Shown: positions 10,488 through 33,736 of the stretch, piece by piece
How positions within the stretch are numbered: the first letter of the stretch is position 1
How the letters are laid out: every line of letters starts with the position of its first letter
Sequence record: NC_061446.1
Reading direction: 5' to 3' (one strand)
DNA length: 64,000 nucleotides
Notes under the pieces: generated by a model
What the model saw: the letters and a program-made list of their open reading frames with translations, nothing else
Database searches by the model: none
Told to the model about the DNA's origin: nothing
Made by a program: the position numbers and the translations under genes

Positions 10488-11080
10488 TGGATTTATCTGC
10501 AATCGGTTACGCCCCGAAGCAGTTTCGAGTAATCCCCGTTGAGAAGGGCAATCTCGTTACTGACTTCATTGAAGGTAAGTTCCGCGTTATTGGCGTTGAG
10601 TGTAACGCTCGTGGTGCTTACGGTAGTCCTATCCAAAAGAGTATTGCACGTCGCTTCCCCGAAGTTGTGCGCCACGTCGATTCAATCGACTATGAGCACG
10701 AACTAACAATCGGTAAGACGCACATGGTACGTGTCAGCACTCGTCATCGTCGCAATCTGTTTGTGGCTAACATGCACATTGCGCGTGGCTTCGGTCTGGG
10801 TCTCAACGGTTCTTCTGAGGGTTTTCACAAACCTATCAATCGTTTCAGCGAGAAGTTCCTGACGCGAGCTTTTGAAGACCTGCTGGAGCAGTGTGCAAAA
10901 GAAAACATTGCACCAGACAGACAGATTGCAATCCAACGTTTCTACGGCGGATTAGGCGGGGTTTCGTGGGAAGAAGTATGTGCAGTTCTGGACGCTATCT
11001 GCGAGAAGCACCAGTTCAATATGTACGCCTATCTACCACGCAACTACAACACTAACTTTGTGCGGGGCGTCGCTCAATAA
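10487..11080 (+). CDS. macrodomain protein (Poa1p/DarG-like)
   Basis: GVECNARGAYGSPIQKSIARRFP and GGLGGVSWEEV match the macrodomain N-x-x-G and GxGGxxW motifs. Confidence 0.75.
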   Translation: MDLSAIGYAPKQFRVIPVEKGNLVTDFIEGKFRVIGVECNARGAYGSPIQKSIARRFPEVVRHVDSIDYEHELTIGKTHMVRVSTRHRRNLFVANMHIARGFGLGLNGSSEGFHKPINRFSEKFLTRAFEDLLEQCAKENIAPDRQIAIQRFYGGLGGVSWEEVCAVLDAICEKHQFNMYAYLPRNYNTNFVRGVAQ

Positions 11081-11092
11081 CTCTGGGGTGTA

Positions 11093-11437
11093 TTGATGAA
11101 TACAATACGCGGATTTGATTGGCTCTTTTACGGAGATGGAACCGATAGTGGCCAACACTCAATTTTAAGCGTCGTTGTTGAACAAGCAACGAAATCAGTG
11201 CAGGTGGAAGTGAAGCCAGGAATGGCGGTGCCTGTAATTCAAGCGATTCAGGAAAATGAAGTCCTGTACGCTCAAACGGACGCTGGCCTGTATCGCATTC
11301 GCTATACTTGTTCGTTCCGTTCACTGGATGCTAACGCATTCCCGAAAGACAAAACAACCTTCCGCTTGAAGCTGATTGCTTGCGATTTTCTGGCGGACGT
11401 AACAACGCACGATAAGCTGTCGGAGTACGTGCCATGA
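11093..11437 (+). CDS. hypothetical protein
   Basis: In-operon ORF, ATGA-coupled downstream. Confidence 0.65.
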   Translation: MMNTIRGFDWLFYGDGTDSGQHSILSVVVEQATKSVQVEVKPGMAVPVIQAIQENEVLYAQTDAGLYRIRYTCSFRSLDANAFPKDKTTFRLKLIACDFLADVTTHDKLSEYVP

Positions 11438-12186
11438 TCACTGTACAGAAAATTGAAGCCCGTTTAAAAAGACTGGACTATACTCGGCCCTCACCTTCGC
11501 GTGAGATGCTTGAGGGACTTATGCAAGACGGGCGCACTCGCATTCTCAAGAAGTCTGAGACTGACTTGTGTGCTGACTCAAATCGTTACTTTGAGTTCTG
11601 TCTTTCGCAAGTCGGCTCTTTCTGTACTGCCGCATATAATGCTGTGGAGATCGGTCTGTCTCTCAACATTCAACCAATCTATATTGCGGCTGCTATTCAT
11701 CTGCACGGCAGCGACTGGCAGTATCGCTTTCTCGAATTAAAGCGTTTCGGCCTGTTGGATCGTGGCGATCACACTGTGTGGCGTTCTGCTGATTCGTGGT
11801 TTGGGCTGGGTGAAGCACGTCGTCGTTTGGTACATGCTGGTGCCTCGTCTGAAATCTCTACCGGTCAGTCTATTCTGCGTATGGCCGTGCGTAAGGGTGA
11901 TATGGAAAAGATTCGTAAGATTGCAGAAACGAATCCGCATCGCATGATGTCCATTCTCAACATCCGTAAGGAGCCTATGTACAATGACCCTCGTACTCTC
12001 GCCGCAAAGAAAGCGCGTGAGAAAGCGAAATCAGATGCTGCGGCTGCCGGTAAGAAGCTGGTGGAGAAAGGCGCGTTCAACGATTTGGGTGGCGTGTTCA
12101 ATAAAACGATCACAAAAGCAGACCCGACACGTCCTCGTACCGCTGATGAATACACAACTGCTGGTGGCCGAAAGTACACCATGTAG
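11434..12186 (+). CDS. hypothetical protein, basic C-terminus
   Basis: 250-aa ORF with GGAG RBS. Confidence 0.75.
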   Translation: MITVQKIEARLKRLDYTRPSPSREMLEGLMQDGRTRILKKSETDLCADSNRYFEFCLSQVGSFCTAAYNAVEIGLSLNIQPIYIAAAIHLHGSDWQYRFLELKRFGLLDRGDHTVWRSADSWFGLGEARRRLVHAGASSEISTGQSILRMAVRKGDMEKIRKIAETNPHRMMSILNIRKEPMYNDPRTLAAKKAREKAKSDAAAAGKKLVEKGAFNDLGGVFNKTITKADPTRPRTADEYTTAGGRKYTM

Positions 12187-12209
12187 GTCACGACTCCAAG
12201 GAGAAGATT

Positions 12210-12587
12210 TTGAAAATCGAATACATAGTTACGCAGATTGAAAAGCTCGTACATAATGAGTACGATACCGTCAATAAATATAGCGGTATGACGGCTAGCG
12301 AAATCGCCAAGACAGAAGGCAAACTTATCTTCATTATGAACAATACATTTGTTCACGATAAGCTCCTGTGTCTGCCTGATGATCATCGTGGTGCTTTTCG
12401 TCCTGTAGAGAATATGGAAACATTGCGCACGGGTCTTCTTGGCCATGTGCATAACATGCCTATCTACAGTGACTGGATGCACGAGCCGCATTCGAGAACG
12501 GGCGTCAACCGAGAGCCTCGGGTGGCTGTTGTTGATCTGGAAACCAACGCAATTTTTCGAATTGAAGCAGAGAAATTTGTTTGCTGA
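12210..12587 (+). CDS. hypothetical protein
   Basis: AAGGAG RBS, TTG start. Confidence 0.65.
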   Translation: MKIEYIVTQIEKLVHNEYDTVNKYSGMTASEIAKTEGKLIFIMNNTFVHDKLLCLPDDHRGAFRPVENMETLRTGLLGHVHNMPIYSDWMHEPHSRTGVNREPRVAVVDLETNAIFRIEAEKFVC

Positions 12588-12640
12588 TTTTCTGCGGACG
12601 GTAATTTCGACAGGTCAAAACAAATAACGGAAACATAATC

Positions 12641-13411
12641 ATGAGCAACGTTGATACAACAATGCCTGAAGGTAAGTGGGAGTTCAATGAGCCAGTTGCT
12701 GCTGTGTTTGATAACATGCTGCAAAACTCAATCCCGTCTTATGATCGTATGCGTGACCTGACGTATCGTTTAGGTCGTCAGTTCGTAACTCCTGGTACGG
12801 CTATCGTTGACTTGGGTGCAAGCCTAGGTCGTGCGATTGAGCCGTTCTGCAAAGAGTTCGGTCCGTACAACTATCATCACTGCCCGCACTCCGATGACGC
12901 AGATAGCGAAACAGGCAATCATTACAGCCTGTATGAGATCGCTCCTGCCATGCGCGAACGCCTGATGACTAACGACGTGTTGGTTGCTGCTGGCGCCAAG
13001 CTGGAGCGTGACTCTCTGACTGACGTTGATACGTTCCGCTTTGATGGACAAGTCGAATGCTCGTTGATTCTGTCTGTGCTCACTCTCCAGTTTACGCCGA
13101 TTGAACATCGTCAGCACATTCTGGAAAAAGTGTACGACAGCCTGGAGAAAGGCGGCGCGTTCATCCTCGTTGAGAAAGTACTCGGTGACGATAACTTCCT
13201 CGACCGTCTTCTGGTAAGCACGTACTATCAGATGAAAGGCGATAACGGTTACTCGCAGGAAAGCATTGCGACGAAACGTAAGTCACTTGAAGGCGTACTC
13301 GTTCCTGTGAAAGCCTCATGGAACGAAGAACTGCTGCGTAAAGCTGGCTTCGACCGCGTAGAGTGCTTCTACCGTGACCTGAACTTCGCAGGCTGGATTG
13401 CAATCAAGTAA
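12641..13411 (+). CDS. cmoA: carboxy-S-adenosyl-L-methionine synthase (CmoA family)
   Basis: WEFNEPVAAVFDNMLQNSIPSY, DLGASLG, LTLQF, GGAFILVEK, NGYSQESIATKRKSLE; Arg at 13277-13279 aligns with E. coli CmoA Arg199. Confidence 0.88.
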   Translation: MSNVDTTMPEGKWEFNEPVAAVFDNMLQNSIPSYDRMRDLTYRLGRQFVTPGTAIVDLGASLGRAIEPFCKEFGPYNYHHCPHSDDADSETGNHYSLYEIAPAMRERLMTNDVLVAAGAKLERDSLTDVDTFRFDGQVECSLILSVLTLQFTPIEHRQHILEKVYDSLEKGGAFILVEKVLGDDNFLDRLLVSTYYQMKGDNGYSQESIATKRKSLEGVLVPVKASWNEELLRKAGFDRVECFYRDLNFAGWIAIK

Positions 13412-13457: not shown

Positions 13458-14324
13458 ATGGCTAATGTACGCCAAGAACGCTGCGCACGAATGATACGCG
13501 AGTCACTAATCGCAGAAATAAAAAAGGCTCGCTCTAAACGTCCTTACGTCTTCCTCAGTGGCGGCGTAGACTCAAACTGTATTCTGTTTGCTGCACTGGC
13601 TGCTGGTTGCAAGCCAATCACACTGAGCTTCCACATGGAAGGCGTTAACAGTCGTGACTTCCGTGCTGCACAGGCTATCGCTCAGGAGTTTAACCTTGAG
13701 CTGATTGAAGTCGTTCTTCCTAACAGCTATGAGAAGTTGAAGAAAGATGTGCTGCTCATGGCAGAGCGCTACGCCTGCATTCAGAAGAACGAATTTGAAT
13801 GTTCATGGCCAATGCTCTACAGCTTCTTCCATGTTCGCAACCACGCTGCGGAGAATGGCATCAAGAATCCTGTGACGTTTACCGGACAGGGCGCTGACCT
13901 GATGTATCTCAGTAGCAAGAAGGCGAGCATTCACTATAAAGATCGTCCAGACGAATGGCGCAAAGAGGGTCGCGCTAATCCGCATCGCACTCAGGGTCGC
14001 ATCTTACCTGTTATGGCGCGTGATGCTGGTGTGCGTAACATCAAGCCGTGGGATAGCGAAGAAATCCTGCAGGCGTTTCTCGGCACAAGCTGGGAAGACG
14101 TTAACAAGCCTCGTCAGAAAGAGCCGTCGCGCATGGCTTTCGAAGAAGACTTCCAACGTATTCGCGTGTACAACCATCAGAACTTCCAACTCGGTGATAC
14201 CGGAATCGCAGAGCATTTCGAAAAGCTGCTGGCGGACCCTGAGATGAATCCTGATCTTAAATACAAAAGCGTCGTCGGTGTTTACGGTGAGCTTGCCCGT
14301 AAGTACCAGGGAATTGAGTCATGA
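13458..14324 (+). CDS. asparagine-synthase-like ATP-dependent amide ligase (PP-loop domain only)
   Basis: LSGGVDS PP-loop, FTGQGADLMY; no N-terminal Ntn glutaminase domain; GAGG RBS before ATG 13458. Confidence 0.8.
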   Translation: MANVRQERCARMIRESLIAEIKKARSKRPYVFLSGGVDSNCILFAALAAGCKPITLSFHMEGVNSRDFRAAQAIAQEFNLELIEVVLPNSYEKLKKDVLLMAERYACIQKNEFECSWPMLYSFFHVRNHAAENGIKNPVTFTGQGADLMYLSSKKASIHYKDRPDEWRKEGRANPHRTQGRILPVMARDAGVRNIKPWDSEEILQAFLGTSWEDVNKPRQKEPSRMAFEEDFQRIRVYNHQNFQLGDTGIAEHFEKLLADPEMNPDLKYKSVVGVYGELARKYQGIES

Positions 14325-14932
14325 TTCATATCATTGATGGTGGCGTTGGTTGTGATTACGTTTCTGAAAAGTTGCGTGAAGCTGGAATCAATTGCCGTAC
14401 TCATGCGCCCAACAACCCACGCGTTCGCGCTGCATACGCACCTTATGCCTCGCTGTCCATGGGCTTTAGCGTAGAAGAAATTGAGAAGCATATCGGTAAC
14501 GTGCTTGGCACATATCGCGGTCTGTTTCTGATTAGCAGTTACATCGGCTCGCTGGTAGCGCGTAACATGATTGACCAATGCGGCCAAAGCCATAACATCA
14601 TTTACTGCGATGACTTCAAGTGCGGTTCTCTGCCTGTCGTTGCTTCTTCTATTTCTGTAAACACCTATAAGAAGCAACGGCAACTCGGACGTATTGCTGG
14701 ACGTCTCAAACACTTTGACTTTGACCACGAATTTATTATTGCTGACAAGGCAGTGCGATTTGCGGCAGGCTCGGAGTTTGATGAACATGAAGCGCGTAGC
14801 GAACTGAACAACCATGCGAAGTTCCTGTCGAGTCCGTCCATGATTGTTGCAGCACACAAACTCGGTGTGCGTAGCAGCATGTATCATAACTATGCAGGGC
14901 TGGTGAAAGAGTTCATTGAGAATCGCCAGTAG
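14321..14932 (+). CDS. hypothetical protein coupled to the ligase
   Basis: ATGA overlap; N-terminus IHIIDGGVG. Confidence 0.75.
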   Translation: MIHIIDGGVGCDYVSEKLREAGINCRTHAPNNPRVRAAYAPYASLSMGFSVEEIEKHIGNVLGTYRGLFLISSYIGSLVARNMIDQCGQSHNIIYCDDFKCGSLPVVASSISVNTYKKQRQLGRIAGRLKHFDFDHEFIIADKAVRFAAGSEFDEHEARSELNNHAKFLSSPSMIVAAHKLGVRSSMYHNYAGLVKEFIENRQ

Positions 14933-17243: not shown

Positions 17244-17648
17244 ATGAGACCTGAGACTATTGCTCGTACATATAAAGTCCCAAGCCAAACTTTGGAGTCC
17301 GTCCACAACATCTGTGAACGTCAAGGCGTAAAACTGTCCGACGTTGTTCGTCGCTATGTTCAATTCGTCGTTCGCACTCGCGGTGAGTTTCTGCGTTCCG
17401 CGCCTCGTCCTGAGTCGGCTCAGCTTAACGTGCGTATGCCTTTTGATTTAGCTCATTCGTTTAGTCATGTATGTAAGCAAGCAGGTTCTGGTACCAGCAC
17501 AACAATGGTCACTTTCCTGAATGAAATAGTTCAGCTTAATCATATTCCTGAGGAACTCCTTCAGGAGACCGAAGAAGATGTGCGTGAGTATATCCGCAAA
17601 GAACGTGCTCGCCTTGACCTACTGGAAGCTCAATTCGGAAAACAATAA
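17244..17648 (+). CDS. tandem ribbon-helix-helix-like DNA-binding protein
   Basis: Two beta-alpha-alpha-like units: RTYKVP...LSDVVRRYV and QLNVRMP...TMVTFL. Confidence 0.55.
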   Translation: MRPETIARTYKVPSQTLESVHNICERQGVKLSDVVRRYVQFVVRTRGEFLRSAPRPESAQLNVRMPFDLAHSFSHVCKQAGSGTSTTMVTFLNEIVQLNHIPEELLQETEEDVREYIRKERARLDLLEAQFGKQ

Positions 17649-18490
17649 TGACAGTAATAAGTCCAATCCGCTACCAGGGAAATAAGCGAAGTCTTATCCC
17701 TCTCATTCTGGAGCACACACCTTCTGTGCAAGACTGTCCACGTATGGTCGATGTGTTCGGCGGTAGCGCTACTGTGTGCGCGAACATGCCTCAGAAGTTT
17801 CGTGTCTACAACGAACTGAGTCCGCAGGTATTTGAAATCGTCAAGATGCTTGTCGAACAAGACCCGAAGAAAACATTGGGCCAAGTTAAGCGTCTGGTAA
17901 AACATTGGTGCCTGACAAACAGTAACGAAGAAAACTACGATGCGTTCCGTGAAGTTGTCCAGAAGAAGCGCACGGCTATTCTGCATTACGTTGCGCACCG
18001 ACACGCCCACTCGAACATGCTGCGCTTTAATCAGCAGGGCATATACAATGTTGGCTTTGGTGATCGTGGTCTGATTGGCAAGTTCGATGAACTGGAGCAA
18101 GAACTCACTACGTTTCATAGTCACATGCAGGGCGTCCACCTGACGAACATGAAGTACGGTAAGCTGTTGAGCCGTCTCGGTCGCCAATTGAACTCCAACA
18201 CGTTCTGTTACTTCGACCCGCCTTATCTTGCCTCAGGTGCTATGCAGTATGGCAAGTGGACGGAAGCAAACGAACGCAATCTACTCGCAACGCTTGAGCA
18301 ACTGAATCGTTTAGGCGTGCCGTGGATGTTGAGCAACGTTACTGAACATCGACACTTCTCAAACGACTTGTTGAAGCGTTGGCTAAAGAAACATGCAACG
18401 ACTGTGCTCTACCCAAACAAAAGCTATGCGATGAACAACGGCCAGAGTGGTTCGCATAGCACCGTTGAAATTCTGGCAATGAACTACTGA
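17648..18490 (+). CDS. dam: DNA adenine methyltransferase (Dam/D12 class)
   Basis: SPIRYQGNK, DVFGGSATV, YFDPPY. Confidence 0.88.
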   Translation: MTVISPIRYQGNKRSLIPLILEHTPSVQDCPRMVDVFGGSATVCANMPQKFRVYNELSPQVFEIVKMLVEQDPKKTLGQVKRLVKHWCLTNSNEENYDAFREVVQKKRTAILHYVAHRHAHSNMLRFNQQGIYNVGFGDRGLIGKFDELEQELTTFHSHMQGVHLTNMKYGKLLSRLGRQLNSNTFCYFDPPYLASGAMQYGKWTEANERNLLATLEQLNRLGVPWMLSNVTEHRHFSNDLLKRWLKKHATTVLYPNKSYAMNNGQSGSHSTVEILAMNY

Positions 18491-28980: not shown

Positions 28981-29014
28981 GACAGAGAAAGAGCAACCGA
29001 TAAGAGATACGACA

Positions 29015-29725
29015 ATGGCAAAAACTGCTATCAAAACAAAGGACGGAAAGAAGAAAAAGAATGATGGGCTAAAGTTCGAGTTGAATAAACTCAGCTCCGT
29101 CAATCAATTAAAAGGCGCAGCGTATAACCCGCGTTTCATTACAGACAGTCGCCTGAAAGCACTCGAAGGTTCTTTGGGTAGCTTCGGCGACTTGTCTGGT
29201 ATCGTGTTCAACAACAACATCAAATCTGGTGTGTTGATCTCAGGCCACCAGCGCTTGAAGTCAATCGAAGGCTGGAAGACTCGTATCGAGGTCCAGAAGT
29301 CTGTTGATAAGCACGGCACTATCGGCCTGGGTTATATTCACGCAACGCATCCGAAGAAGTCTGATAAGGTGATCAGCATTCCTCTGCGTATCGTGAACTG
29401 GACCGATAAGAAAGCAGAGTACGCTGCAAACATCGCGGCGAACGCCCACGGAGGTGAGTTCGATAACAAGAAACTCGCCAAGCTGGTTGAGCAACTCGAC
29501 CTCAACACAATCAAGCCGCAGTTGCTTGGCCTTGACCCGTTAGAGATTCGCGGTCTGCAAGCCAAGCTGAAAGTTCAGGCTGTTGTTCAGGACGAGAAAC
29601 GTGCTGGCAAGACAACTGGCCAGATGAACGGCAGTACCGGTAAGTTCAATGAGTACAACCCTGATGATGTGGGTGAAGCTCTGAACTGCACCTGCCCGCG
29701 TTGTGGATTCAAGTTCGAGGGATAA
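29015..29725 (+). CDS. ParB/Srx-like N-terminal domain protein with C-terminal zinc knuckle
   Basis: YNPRFIT, LISGHQRLKSI, terminal CTCPRCGFKF. Confidence 0.8.
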   Translation: MAKTAIKTKDGKKKKNDGLKFELNKLSSVNQLKGAAYNPRFITDSRLKALEGSLGSFGDLSGIVFNNNIKSGVLISGHQRLKSIEGWKTRIEVQKSVDKHGTIGLGYIHATHPKKSDKVISIPLRIVNWTDKKAEYAANIAANAHGGEFDNKKLAKLVEQLDLNTIKPQLLGLDPLEIRGLQAKLKVQAVVQDEKRAGKTTGQMNGSTGKFNEYNPDDVGEALNCTCPRCGFKFEG

Positions 29726-29726
29726 T

Positions 29727-31856
29727 ATGATCATCAAGCCGCCTACGATGAAGGAAATCAACAAGCTGGATAAACCCTGGCGTGGTATGAGTTTCTTCGC
29801 AGGTTGCGGTGGGTCTTCGACCGGTCACAAGATGGCCGGTATCGACATTGTGTTGAGCAACGAGTTTGTTGACTCAGCACGAGAGTCCTACGAAGCGAAC
29901 CATCCGACAACTAAAGTGCTGCCTCATGACATTCGCCGCTTAGACCCAGGCAAGCTGTTGCGCTTCGCTGGTCTGAACAAAGGCGAACTGGATTTACTTG
30001 ACGGTAGTCCTCCTTGCTTCACCGAAGACACGATCATTCATACAGCAGACGGCATGAAGTTCATTTCGGACATGAACGTCGGCGATAGAGCAATGACCAG
30101 TGTCGGGCAGTATCATCCCGTGTACGACACGATGGTGCGACCTTACGTCGGCACGATGCACAAAATCGAAACACTGATCAGCAGCAACAAAGCAACGCCC
30201 GAGCATCCGTTCTTTATCAGACGTCCACTTGAGGCGGGTGGCTTCTCTGATCCGTTCTGGTGCGATGCGAAAGACGTGCAGGAAGGTGATCTACTCGGTA
30301 CACCTCGTGTTACACCTGACCAGCCTGCTGATGTGTACCACAATCAGATGAATCAATTGCCGAAGATGATTCGTCAGTGGGTAAGCATTCCTGAGTTCTG
30401 GTGGATGGTAGGTCACTGGTGTGATCGTGGTTCAATCGAAACTATCGGTGGCATTGAAGCAGTTAGCTTCGAGTCGCATACCAGTATTGAAAACGCGATG
30501 ATTGAGCAGGCGTTTGACGCGCTTAAACTCAGCAGCCTGAATCGCATCGAAACAATGACAGCGCAACGTAGAACGTTCCGTACTGTTATTGATGTTGAGC
30601 TGGTGCAGTTTCTGCGCCGCTTTATCAGTCACGGCAACAACACGTTCTCTCGTCGTCTGCCTGCCATGTTGTTCCACATCAACGCGGAACTGAAACAGCA
30701 ATTCATTCTGGGCTGTGCTGGCATGGATTATGTGACTGCTATGGGCACGGGCATTGCTATCACTTCTGCAAGCAGGCGCTTCCTGCTTGAACTGAATTAC
30801 CTGTGCTGCTCTGCATTCAATCGTCCTTTGTTTGACGGATTGACTTGGGGCGACCTGTATTTCGGTAGTTCGTTAACGCCTCGTGAACGTAACAGTGCGC
30901 GTGAGCATATCGGCTACCTGTTCTTGCAGGACGAGCACAACTTCTTCCATGAGTTCAGCAAAGAAGACTCGCATCTCTGGACAGAAGTGATTGAGAACCT
31001 AGCGTATCAAGCAACCTGTGACGTCTATAACTTCTCTGTTGAAGTGGACGAGACGTATGTGGCGAACGGTGTTGTTGTTCACAACTGCAAAGGCTTCTCT
31101 ACTGCTGGCGTGAAAGAAGAAGGCTGGGGCAAAGAAGTTAAGTACAGCGATAACAAGTATCAGCAGGTTGATGACCTGTTCGATCAGTATTGTCGTATGT
31201 TGAAAGGCATGATGCCGAAAGTGTTCACTGCGGAAAACGTTAGCGGTCTTGTTAAGGGTGCCTCGAAAGGTTACTTCCTTGAGATCATGCGAACGTTTGA
31301 CGAGATTGGCTATTACGTCCGAGCGCCGCTGCTTAATGCTGCATGGCTTGGTGTGCCTCAGTCCCGTGAACGTATCATCTTTATGGGTGTACGCAAAGAC
31401 GTAGCACACGCTCTCGGTTATAAGAGCAATCAGGCTGCTGTGCCTGACGTAGTGCCATGCGATACAATGGCCTTCCTTGCAGACGCACTGCCTCACATTC
31501 AGCGATATAAGTCCACGAAGAAGGATATCATCACGTATCTTCCTGCGATGAACGGACCGATGCCGACAATCACTGCGGCTGATGCTATAGCGTATGAGAC
31601 GGCGCGATTCTCGTCTGCTGGGTTCGTTGAAGACAACAAAGGTCATCGTCGTAAGTTAACCATCGACGAACTGAAAGTTGTTTCCGGCCTGCCGTCAGAC
31701 TATAAGCTGAAAGGCAAGTTTGAAGAACAGTGGGAGCGCCTAGGTCGTATCTGTGTTCCGGCAATGACACAGGCTGCATCGAAAGCTCTTATCGAACATG
31801 TCCTGCTGCCTTATGCTAAGAAGCGTAAGAAGAAGCCTGGCGAAATCTTTAAGTAA
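29727..31856 (+). CDS. C5 cytosine DNA methyltransferase-family enzyme with intein; predicted carboxymethyltransferase
   Basis: Motif I FFAGCGG, IV GSPP/CKGFS (split by intein), VI ENV, VIII QSRER, X LGRICVP (Arg at 31746-31748 instead of Asn). Confidence 0.85.
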   Translation: MIIKPPTMKEINKLDKPWRGMSFFAGCGGSSTGHKMAGIDIVLSNEFVDSARESYEANHPTTKVLPHDIRRLDPGKLLRFAGLNKGELDLLDGSPPCFTEDTIIHTADGMKFISDMNVGDRAMTSVGQYHPVYDTMVRPYVGTMHKIETLISSNKATPEHPFFIRRPLEAGGFSDPFWCDAKDVQEGDLLGTPRVTPDQPADVYHNQMNQLPKMIRQWVSIPEFWWMVGHWCDRGSIETIGGIEAVSFESHTSIENAMIEQAFDALKLSSLNRIETMTAQRRTFRTVIDVELVQFLRRFISHGNNTFSRRLPAMLFHINAELKQQFILGCAGMDYVTAMGTGIAITSASRRFLLELNYLCCSAFNRPLFDGLTWGDLYFGSSLTPRERNSAREHIGYLFLQDEHNFFHEFSKEDSHLWTEVIENLAYQATCDVYNFSVEVDETYVANGVVVHNCKGFSTAGVKEEGWGKEVKYSDNKYQQVDDLFDQYCRMLKGMMPKVFTAENVSGLVKGASKGYFLEIMRTFDEIGYYVRAPLLNAAWLGVPQSRERIIFMGVRKDVAHALGYKSNQAAVPDVVPCDTMAFLADALPHIQRYKSTKKDIITYLPAMNGPMPTITAADAIAYETARFSSAGFVEDNKGHRRKLTIDELKVVSGLPSDYKLKGKFEEQWERLGRICVPAMTQAASKALIEHVLLPYAKKRKKKPGEIFK
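30015..31085 (+). mobile_element. intein (357 aa) at the MTase catalytic PC motif; degenerate LAGLIDADG remnants
   Basis: Starts CFTEDT, block B ATPEHP, ends YNFSVE...VVHN; +1 residue is the catalytic Cys. Confidence 0.93.
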
Positions 31857-31864
31857 GGACGTCT

Positions 31865-31969
31865 ATGTTCTACGTGGGATTGGGTCTGGGTATCGTGATT
31901 GGAATCATCCTCACGCTATTCTGTCTGTGGTTTTTCTTCCTGAAGGGCTTCGCGGTATTCAAGCCGTGA
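31865..31969 (+). CDS. 34-aa single-TM membrane peptide (not in ORF track)
   Basis: AAGGA RBS; MFYVGLGLGIVIGIILTLFCLWFFFLKGFAVFKP. Confidence 0.6.
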   Translation: MFYVGLGLGIVIGIILTLFCLWFFFLKGFAVFKP

Positions 31970-32002
31970 TCAATTAGGACAAGGACGTCCAGGAGAATTG
32001 AA

Positions 32003-32569
32003 ATGTCTTATTGTTTAGTTCGTGCAATGATGATTGCTCATGTGCAGGACGGACAACTGGTTTGTTCTAAGTACAAGATCAAACTTAGTGCAAGTAACTC
32101 CACGCAACTGCATAACTTCATGCACCGCATCTTCTTTGAATACAACGGTCGTATTCTGCTAGAAGATGAACAGGACCGCGACGCGCTGCCTACACTTAAC
32201 TATCGCAAGCAGGCCAAAGTGCTTGAGGGTAATGGTAGCGTGTTCAGCCGCATCACTCAACTCGGTCAGAAGCACGGCATCACTTGTCATCTGGTTAACG
32301 CGTTTAAGTCGCGTCTGGACGAACTGGCTTACATGTTCTATCTGGTGCAGCCTACAGGCGTTGCGTGTCAGGTACTCGATACCGACAAAGAAGAACTCTG
32401 GGGCAAGACGCTGCTGGTGGGCGCTGACTCTGACGTTGACTATGTAGGGCGCAACGTTGTGCCAATCTTCTGCGATGAAAACTACAACGTTGACGACGCG
32501 GTGCTGGGCAACAACCTATTCACACTGTACGACGATACCACCAAGCTGATGGTGATGGTCGGCAAATAA
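32003..32569 (+). CDS. hypothetical protein
   Basis: AGGAG RBS. Confidence 0.75.
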   Translation: MSYCLVRAMMIAHVQDGQLVCSKYKIKLSASNSTQLHNFMHRIFFEYNGRILLEDEQDRDALPTLNYRKQAKVLEGNGSVFSRITQLGQKHGITCHLVNAFKSRLDELAYMFYLVQPTGVACQVLDTDKEELWGKTLLVGADSDVDYVGRNVVPIFCDENYNVDDAVLGNNLFTLYDDTTKLMVMVGK

Positions 32570-32570
32570 A

Positions 32571-32753
32571 ATGATACGCTACCCGATAATATTCCTCGCT
32601 ACATGGATGCTGGTAGCGTACTCATTATCGACACTGGATGTTTCGCCTGAGTGGTGTGAAAGAATAGGCATGGTATCTGCCGCTATCATCACTCACATCG
32701 AAATCAAATGGCAGCGCTTTATACGAGAGCATTGTCAATATCCCGCCGAGTAA
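32571..32753 (+). CDS. small membrane protein
   Basis: Two short hydrophobic segments. Confidence 0.55.
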   Translation: MIRYPIIFLATWMLVAYSLSTLDVSPEWCERIGMVSAAIITHIEIKWQRFIREHCQYPAE

Positions 32754-32812
32754 TCGGCATATCGGTGTGTGGCACAAACGTGACTGCACCCTCTACCTAA
32801 AAGGTATGTACT

Positions 32813-33736
32813 ATGTCTAAGAAACACACTTCTTATACCAGCGCTTTCGCAATCGGTGAAATGGCTGTTCTGTCTCTTGATCGTTTCGGCCAAAACAAAG
32901 TGCCGTATGGCGTTGTTGAAGGCTGCATGATCTACGGCGACCAGCGCATGTATCGCGTGTCGCTGTTCGTGAACGATGGTCCTGCAAACAACCCGTCAGC
33001 GTTTCTGCATCAAGGTCGCCCAGTCGATGGCTTCCTTGCAGACGATCTGAAAGTCATTACCGACTATCAGTACGCAGACCACATTGGACATGTCGGCCGC
33101 TTCGAAGATCCGAAGCACGAAGTGATTGGCGACTCTAAGTTCAAAGTCGGCCAGCTGGTGGAGGTCGATGTTGACCTCGAACGCGAAGGCGAGTACGACA
33201 AGTTCAACATCCCGGTGATGATTACGGGTGTGCGATACGAAGAAGGCAAAATTCTGTATGACGTAAGCATTCAACGTGCGTACTATGAAGATGGTCGTAT
33301 CAATGGCGGTCGTTTGGTGCGTGACACTTTGACCAATATTGATAGCGTCTTTATCAAACCTGTTGGCGGTTGGCCTGAGACTGTTGTGACTCTCGAAGGC
33401 GATAACGGTCAGTCTGTTGTTGTGAAAGGCGGTAGTGTCACAATCAATAGTCCTAAGATCACGCTGGGCGGCGAAGAACTAAATGTTCTCACGGCAGATA
33501 CAGCGCCTGAGGAAGAAAAAGTTCTGCTCCTTAATGATCTGTTTGACGCTGCGTATGAGGCACATCTCAATGGTGTGTCTTGCGGTGAAAACAACAAGGA
33601 GGCGGCGCGTAACTTCCTTGCTCAGTATATCCGAGAGCAGGATAAGCGTCTGGAGAAGTTCCGTGCTGTCGGTTCTGCGACTGGTCGCATCTCAGGCCGC
33701 ACAGAAAACATGAGCGCTAAACCTCGATCAGAGTAA
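32813..33736 (+). CDS. hypothetical protein with two SH3-like beta modules
   Basis: Internally repeated FAIGE / FKVGQ ... YRV / YDV units; followed by a terminator. Confidence 0.7.
   Translation: MSKKHTSYTSAFAIGEMAVLSLDRFGQNKVPYGVVEGCMIYGDQRMYRVSLFVNDGPANNPSAFLHQGRPVDGFLADDLKVITDYQYADHIGHVGRFEDPKHEVIGDSKFKVGQLVEVDVDLEREGEYDKFNIPVMITGVRYEEGKILYDVSIQRAYYEDGRINGGRLVRDTLTNIDSVFIKPVGGWPETVVTLEGDNGQSVVVKGGSVTINSPKITLGGEELNVLTADTAPEEEKVLLLNDLFDAAYEAHLNGVSCGENNKEAARNFLAQYIREQDKRLEKFRAVGSATGRISGRTENMSAKPRSE

Follow-up and report, generated by a model that had tools for sequence, protein, structure and literature searches.

Among described enzymes, the nearest to the one considered here comes from Synechococcus phage S-B43. 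This protein, SpCmoX, is a naturally occurring DNA cytosine C5-carboxymethyltransferase dependent on carboxy-S-adenosyl-L-methionine (Cx-SAM) (Yang et al., Nat Commun, 7 Dec 2025, PMC12783734; PDB 8YF3). Its Cx-SAM is made by a phage CmoA, and SpCmoY ligates glycine onto the 5-carboxymethylcytosine (5cxmC). In the 1.9-Å structure Arg-350 stands in place of Asn-304 of M.HhaI and directly contacts the carboxymethyl group of Cx-SAM, and the authors pointed out that R350 mirrors the engineered M.MpeI variant N374K. Wild-type SpCmoX accepts Cx-SAM only, whilst R350N accepts neither S-adenosyl-L-methionine (SAM) nor Cx-SAM. The same study used the signature 'SPPC + Arg' to gather 5,615 candidates, reported ParBc neighbours for many CmoX genes and distinguished several ligase clusters with differing binding pockets (PMC12783734). 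Here we describe a gene at positions 29727-31856 of Erwinia phage pEa_SNUABM_30 (MZ443778 / NC_061446, Alexandravirus, 259,771 bp), which infects Erwinia amylovora; the first 64 kb of this genome (64,000 nucleotides) were analysed and are referred to as the window. Megablast of window positions 29000-33000 returned this phage at 100% identity with coinciding coordinates. The gene carries the RefSeq label 'hypothetical protein'. From its sequence and context it probably encodes a member of the CmoX family, a natural Cx-SAM-dependent DNA carboxymethyltransferase, a reading to which we give a probability of about 80%.

Engineered carboxymethyltransferases of the M.MpeI/M.CviPI type were reportedly described by Wang and Kohli in 2021. 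A cationic side chain at M.MpeI N374 was found to be best for Cx-SAM use, with a modelled new salt bridge as the rationale, and engineered cationic M.CviPI variants retain some SAM activity (PMC13288465). The modelled bridge backs the initial annotation of the window gene, which had stated that a basic residue at this site pairs with the Cx-SAM carboxylate in engineered M.MpeI.

Nucleotides 31740-31760 of the window read CTA GGT CGT ATC TGT GTT CCG, or LGRICVP in the frame of 29727..31856. The initial annotation had reported the motif X sequence ERLGRICVP with an Arg codon CGT at 31746-31748, and both DNA and frame agree with it exactly. In the 709-aa precursor this Arg has number 674; once an intein is removed, leaving a 352-aa protein, it becomes R317. 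A PDB sequence search with the part downstream of the intein (the C-extein) returned 8YF3 as its top match (1.1e-32), with ERLGRICVP lying opposite ERVGRMVPP; the residue aligned with the window Arg is R350, as was confirmed by counting in the S-B43 locus sequence. In a profile of 103 family members the Arg column falls on the Asn of M.HaeIII IGNAVP and of M.HhaI FGNSV (N304), and a separate local alignment with HhaI gave the same pairing. M.MpeI (4DKJ) aligned with the family profile at residues 123-299 only, a span that leaves motif X outside. Equivalence with M.MpeI N374 is therefore drawn from the literature (PMC12783734, PMC13288465) and from the HhaI and HaeIII alignments, not from that of 4DKJ. 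The proposal that the Arg occupies the N374-type position holds on these grounds, the residue being displaced in none of the HhaI, HaeIII and SpCmoX alignments.

The spliced protein was also aligned with SpCmoX and the best 120 of 1,196 database matches, making 122 sequences. SPPC is invariant across this alignment, and the motif X column holds R in 118/122 and N in the other four. The Arg is thus a clade-wide character and not a chance substitution. It is retained in Pseudomonas phage PaBG and in Yoloswag, the most distant Erwinia-phage relative compared (QQWERLGRVCVP). In the tree, the window protein sits in a well-supported clade with metagenomic proteins (P0001-P0008).

Full-length alignment of the spliced window protein with SpCmoX (353 columns) gives 36% identity (E 1e-70), and the SpCmoX residues F25, E47, F48, D69, S95-P96-P97-C98 and R350 are all conserved. 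When the family profile was searched against the PDB, 8YF3 scored 1.4e-98 and the next match, HaeIII, 3.4e-44. AlphaFold2 predicted the fold of the spliced protein with a pLDDT of 93.6 and a pTM of 0.92 from a 103-sequence alignment, and with a pLDDT of 34 from the single sequence. Foldseek of the alignment-based model against the PDB placed 8YF3 first (E 6.7e-30, TM 0.73/0.77), with HhaI and HaeIII behind.

A closer look at the coding sequence shows that the methyltransferase is split. Pfam recognised PF00145 in the precursor at 6.4e-38, together with Hint/Intein_splicing matches mid-protein. The junctions read ...LLDGSPP / CFTEDTIIH ... VANGVVVHN / CKGFSTAG..., which puts the insertion exactly at the catalytic Cys of motif IV. 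All landmarks of a class 1 intein are present (Cys1, a TPEH block B, C-terminal His-Asn and a +1 Cys), and the +1 Cys of splicing is itself the motif IV nucleophile. The initial annotation, which did not mention the intein, had called motifs I, IV, VI, VIII and IX canonical; motifs I, VI, VIII and IX are so. Motif IV is not canonical in the gene and becomes so only in the spliced protein, because the intein sits between SPP and the catalytic Cys. Removal of the intein leaves motif IV contiguous as GSPPCKGFS, in a sequence that is colinear and gapless at the junction with PaBG, SpCmoX and the intein-less metagenomic homologue P0001 (71% identity, 353 aa). The metagenomic homologues, PaBG and S-B43 have no intein at this site, whilst in the phage collection it occurs in 48 records from Erwinia phages, 2 from Dickeya phages and 1 from a Yersinia phage. 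No paper on an intein inside a C5 methyltransferase was found in the literature.

An interrupted catalytic motif raises the prospect that the gene is dead or conditionally active, the intein splicing rarely or never, in which case mature enzyme would be scarce or absent and the Arg vestigial. The Pfam intein models do score under their gathering thresholds (Intein_splicing 30-33 bits against 35.8; Hint_2 24-25 against 28.4), and neither Pfam nor a PDB sequence search, which gave no significant match, picked out an endonuclease family in the central part of the intein. Against this, Cys1, TxxH, the terminal His-Asn and the +1 Cys are intact both here and in Yoloswag, where the intein is only 39% identical. 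The exteins of the two phages are 77% identical with a dN/dS of 0.12-0.13, which points to purifying selection; the intein diverges much faster than the exteins. The intein-bearing gene is, moreover, maintained in 51 phage records. Since the exteins are under purifying selection and both the splicing landmarks and the motif X Arg are retained, a spliced and selected enzyme is favoured, and we regard a dead or seldom spliced gene as very improbable.

A distantly related intein (23% identical) was observed in Escherichia phage A4 (Asteriusvirus, L016 2770-4668) at the same site, GGFP/C...VVHN/CQAWS. Its host protein is an ordinary cytosine methyltransferase of the Asn type (LGNGW). Because the A4 intein occupies this site in an Asn-type enzyme, the intein lineage appears to target motif IV of C5 methyltransferases generally and not CmoX specifically.

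The initial annotation had proposed a survey of whether such Gly-Arg enzymes co-occur with phage cmoA. The window contains both a CmoA homologue and a CmoY-like ligase (Table 1), and these, together with the ParB-like neighbour, agree with the CmoX neighbourhoods described in PMC12783734. In the PDB the window CmoA best matches E. coli CmoA (4GEK/4IWN) and H. influenzae YecO (1IM8); its identity to SpCmoA is 30% (E 5e-27). The ligase consists of the synthetase domain of asparagine synthetase B alone, with a PP-loop SGGVDS and without the glutaminase domain (PF00733 at 4.8e-9), and is 35% identical to SpCmoY (E 7e-38). The ParB-like protein had no Pfam match at E<0.01. In PaBG, the closest isolate outside the Erwinia/Dickeya/Yersinia group, gp310-gp306 are annotated as ParB-like, cytosine methylase, 'tRNA methyltransferase', hypothetical and asparagine synthase, corresponding to a ParB-CmoX-CmoA-x-ligase cluster. 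Identities to the PaBG counterparts are 47% for CmoX, 42% for CmoA, 42.5% for the ligase and 43% (3e-50) for the ParB-like protein, whose PaBG counterpart likewise lies upstream of CmoX. The gene order in phages S-B05 and S-B43 is CmoA-CmoY-CmoX, and a 278-kb metagenomic phage contig (L011) with a 50%-identical CmoX carries a CmoX-chorismate mutase-CmoA-ligase cluster.

Within the sequenced phage collection, where tblastn was run collection-wide and returned one place per record for CmoA, ligase and CmoX, 48 Erwinia-phage records were matched by each of the CmoX C-extein, CmoA, ligase and intein. CmoA, ligase and intein also matched two Dickeya AD1 records and one Yersinia phage. The same pattern is visible in Day et al. 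2018, where a methyltransferase, a ParB-like protein, an asparagine synthase and a further methyltransferase were all listed as present in AD1 and Y3 and all as absent from JA11, and were left uninterpreted.

The four aligned homologues with N at motif X (P0050, P0051, P0071 and P0091) read ERLGNSVPP and keep SPPC and the remaining family residues. They form one clade (SH-aLRT 99) nested in the Arg-type tree, for which HhaI served as outgroup. No CmoA-like open reading frame (ORF) was found in the 17-21 kb visible around two of them (L009, L010), and two Arg-type sisters (L018, L019) have a CmoA-like gene 3-5 kb downstream, in a comparison that covers a small sample of partly visible contigs. 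The clade may represent a natural reversion to SAM use.

Several observations weigh against a CmoX assignment for the window gene. Family membership alone does not fix the cofactor, because these four close homologues carry Asn. Identity to SpCmoX is only 36%, and the target-recognition region, which in SpCmoX recognises GC, is not conserved between the two proteins. In the window cmoA and the ligase gene lie 16 kb from cmoX and are not adjacent to it as in S-B43. The window CmoA has TIGR00740 (CmoA) as its best NCBIfam match at 1.6e-40, under the curated cut-off, and has no Pfam match at E<0.01. It also bears an insertion of ~20-25 residues (about residues 70-95; His/Asp-rich, HHCPHSDDADSETGNH) relative to E. 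coli and S-B43 CmoA, which is probably why it scores under the curated family cut-offs. Splicing we infer from motifs alone, with intein models below threshold. Lastly, searches of the literature found no biochemical or mass-spectrometric data for this phage or genus, and no paper tying Erwinia phages or these jumbo phages to cmoA or 5cxmC.

The distance between cmoA and cmoX would suit an ordinary SAM-dependent enzyme producing 5-methylcytosine (5mC), in which the Arg is just tolerated, while the phage CmoA works in tRNA modification or depletes SAM. Such an enzyme would be expected to show the complete C5-methyltransferase motif set, as the window protein does, and the residual SAM activity of the cationic M.CviPI variants (PMC13288465) is in keeping with it. 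However, wild-type SpCmoX does not use SAM (PMC12783734), the Arg is kept in 118/122 homologues, and within the phage group CmoA, ligase and CmoX occur as a set or not at all. Moreover, 5mC would offer an amide ligase no substrate. An ordinary methyltransferase is therefore very improbable in our view. The CmoX assignment draws on direct observations of homology, residue correspondence, predicted fold, gene co-occurrence and purifying selection; the cofactor, product, amine, target sequence and timing of splicing in pEa_SNUABM_30 are what we infer.

Table 1. Features of the predicted CmoX pathway in the first 64 kb of Erwinia phage pEa_SNUABM_30.
Feature	Position	Strand	Description
CmoA homologue (carboxy-S-adenosyl-L-methionine synthase)	12641..13411	+	256 aa; annotated 'tRNA methyltransferase'
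CmoY-like ATP-dependent amide ligase	13458..14324	+	288 aa; directly after cmoA; annotated 'hypothetical protein'
ParB-like protein	29015..29725	+	C-terminal CxxC zinc-ribbon motif; directly upstream of CmoX; RefSeq 'ParB-like partition protein'
CmoX precursor gene, MPK69_gp048	29727..31856	+	709 aa; C5 cytosine methyltransferase fold split by intein
N-extein	29727..30014	+	96 aa; motif I FFAGCGGSS; E46/F47 and D68 (adenosine contacts); end ...LLDGSPP
Intein	30015..31085	+	357 aa; Cys1 (CFTEDTIIH), block B TPEH, C-terminal VVVHN, then +1 Cys
C-extein	31086..31856	+	256 aa plus stop; CKGFS catalytic Cys = +1 residue; order: CKGFS, motif VI ENV, motif VIII QSRER, target-recognition region, motif IX, motif X ERLGRICVP
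Motif X Arg codon CGT	31746..31748	+	R317 of spliced protein; = SpCmoX R350, HhaI N304

Under the CmoX reading, the pathway would begin with the phage CmoA converting SAM and prephenate to Cx-SAM, to which the host CmoA could contribute. In a second step the CmoX precursor would excise its 357-aa intein, joining ...GSPP to CKGFS... and turning the +1 Cys into the motif IV nucleophile. In a third, mature CmoX would flip out the target cytosine, the Cys would attack C6, and the C5 carbanion would take the carboxymethyl group from Cx-SAM, whose carboxylate would be held by R317. The CmoY-like ligase would then adenylate the carboxylate of 5cxmC and amidate it with an amine, likely glycine or another small amine. 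The outcome would be hypermodified DNA resistant to host restriction. Steps 1-3 are modelled on the chemistry of SpCmoA and SpCmoX and the ligase step on that of SpCmoY, and are carried over to the window by homology and context.

The genes following cmoA were found to vary among otherwise very similar jumbo phages, the segment between cmoA and a gp019-like gene being exchanged (window 13458-14932; L013-L015, 5760-9900). The gp019 gene is the next conserved one of the backbone and is 79% identical in SNUABM_17. In the window the cassette holds a single ligase of the SpCmoY/PaBG type. AD1 (L014) has a DUF1611 protein and a different ligase in this place; SNUABM_17 (L015) has a 420-aa protein of no known type, DUF1611, an alanine-racemase-like protein and the AD1-type ligase; and Y3 (L013) has a ligase and a 2OG-Fe(II) oxygenase. 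Between the two ligase types identity is 24%, against 79% for the flanking gene. That the cassettes differ while their flanks agree suggests differing final modifications on a shared 5cxmC handle.

This variation bears on whether the final product in pEa_SNUABM_30 resembles that of S-B43. The enzyme could be CmoX-like and 5cxmC nevertheless be the final base, or the ligase product could be something other than a simple amino-acid amide, giving an end modification unlike the 5-glycylcarboxymethylcytosine of S-B43. We consider this a serious contender, although the odds seem to lie somewhat against it. In its favour, identity of the ligase to SpCmoY is only 35%, sister phages pair a 24%-identical ligase with DUF1611, racemase-like or 2OG-oxygenase genes, and ligases with differing binding pockets already fall into several clusters in PMC12783734. 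Conversely, the window ligase belongs to the type that most resembles SpCmoY and its PaBG counterpart, and its gene directly follows cmoA. A different end product would in any case touch the last step only and leave the Arg finding unaffected.

A more speculative proposal, which we put forward tentatively and think rather unlikely in full, is that the CmoA/CmoX pathway of Alexandravirus, Sasquatchvirus and Yoloswagvirus combines two features undescribed for the family, an intein-interrupted zymogen and the swapping of ligase cassettes. As to the first, the catalytic Cys may double as the splicing nucleophile, so that DNA modification would require protein splicing and might take its timing from it. 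As to the second, the phages may draw on alternative sets, namely ligase A alone; DUF1611 with ligase B; the 420-aa protein with DUF1611, the racemase-like protein and ligase B; or a ligase with the 2OG-Fe(II) oxygenase. If such swapping is real, sister phages would attach different amines to one and the same 5cxmC handle, possibly including undescribed ones.

Metagenomic contig L011 contains, at 11022-13010 between its CmoX and CmoA homologues, a type II chorismate mutase (PF01817, 8.8e-12). Such an enzyme would let the phage make prephenate, the co-substrate of CmoA, whose supply was flagged as an open question by Yang et al. (PMC12783734). No homologue of this gene was found in the window or in the sequenced phage-isolate collection. 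The ORF gp016 (12210-12587) was considered as a chorismate mutase and rejected, having no similarity to the L011 CM_2 gene; likewise gp016 and gp019, the ORFs flanking cmoA and the ligase, had no match to the PaBG or L011 neighbours and were rejected as their counterparts.

The window also encodes a Dam-family N6-adenine DNA methyltransferase (17648-18490; TIGR00571, 8.7e-31). Because of this gene, pEa_SNUABM_30 probably carries a second, conventional DNA modification.

Taken together, these results uphold the initial proposal of a natural carboxymethyltransferase, which SpCmoX homology, fold and partner genes support, in a family that was already published in December 2025. The suggested use of motif X as a search signature is likewise borne out by the 5,615 candidates collected with 'SPPC + Arg' in PMC12783734, and the motif X Gly-Arg signature does mark natural carboxymethyltransferases. 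The description of the Arg as a single-residue cofactor switch overstated the case. The Arg is necessary for Cx-SAM use, but replacing it does not turn the natural enzyme into a methyltransferase, since SpCmoX R350N works with neither SAM nor Cx-SAM. The enzyme class, signature and partners are thus published, and the window enzyme adds a new member, as yet uncharacterised, to the CmoX family; the text and supplements of PMC12783734 make no mention of Erwinia, Dickeya, PaBG or inteins. Four vaguely annotated genes become a coherent predicted DNA-hypermodification pathway, which can be extended to some 50 jumbo phages sequenced from Erwinia, Dickeya and Yersinia. Because such phages are under study for biocontrol, any resistance of their DNA to host restriction would be of practical interest. 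Three smaller points are new, namely an intein placed at the catalytic Cys, ligase cassettes that are swapped and a sub-clade bearing Asn. Each supplies a natural test set, whether for cofactor specificity or for the variety of 5cxmC derivatives.

Compared with known systems, the window enzyme most resembles SpCmoX, with which it shares the SPPC motif IV, an ER(L/V)GR motif X and all named Cx-SAM contacts, and both are accompanied by a CmoA and an Asn-synthetase-like ligase. Its ParB-like neighbour is of the kind reported near many CmoX genes, although none is annotated within ~3.5 kb upstream of the S-B43 cluster. It differs in that an intein splits its gene at the catalytic Cys. The setting is also different, the host being an enterobacterial plant pathogen and the phage a 260-kb jumbo myovirus. 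PaBG differs from the window in having all the genes adjacent and no intein, and its genes are annotated as ordinary metabolism genes. In the engineered enzymes M.MpeI N374K/R and M.CviPI Y205K (PMC13288465), a cationic motif X residue by the transferred group likewise enables Cx-SAM use. There, however, one mutation confers a neomorphic activity and SAM is still used, whereas the natural family is Cx-SAM-specific; other pocket features must differ in the latter, because SpCmoX R350N is dead with both cofactors. M.HhaI and M.HaeIII share with the window enzyme the fold, the motif order I-X and the catalytic Cys/Glu/Arg set. They differ in having GN and not GR at motif X and FPC or PPC and not SPPC at motif IV, and they are SAM-dependent enzymes without CmoA or ligase partners.

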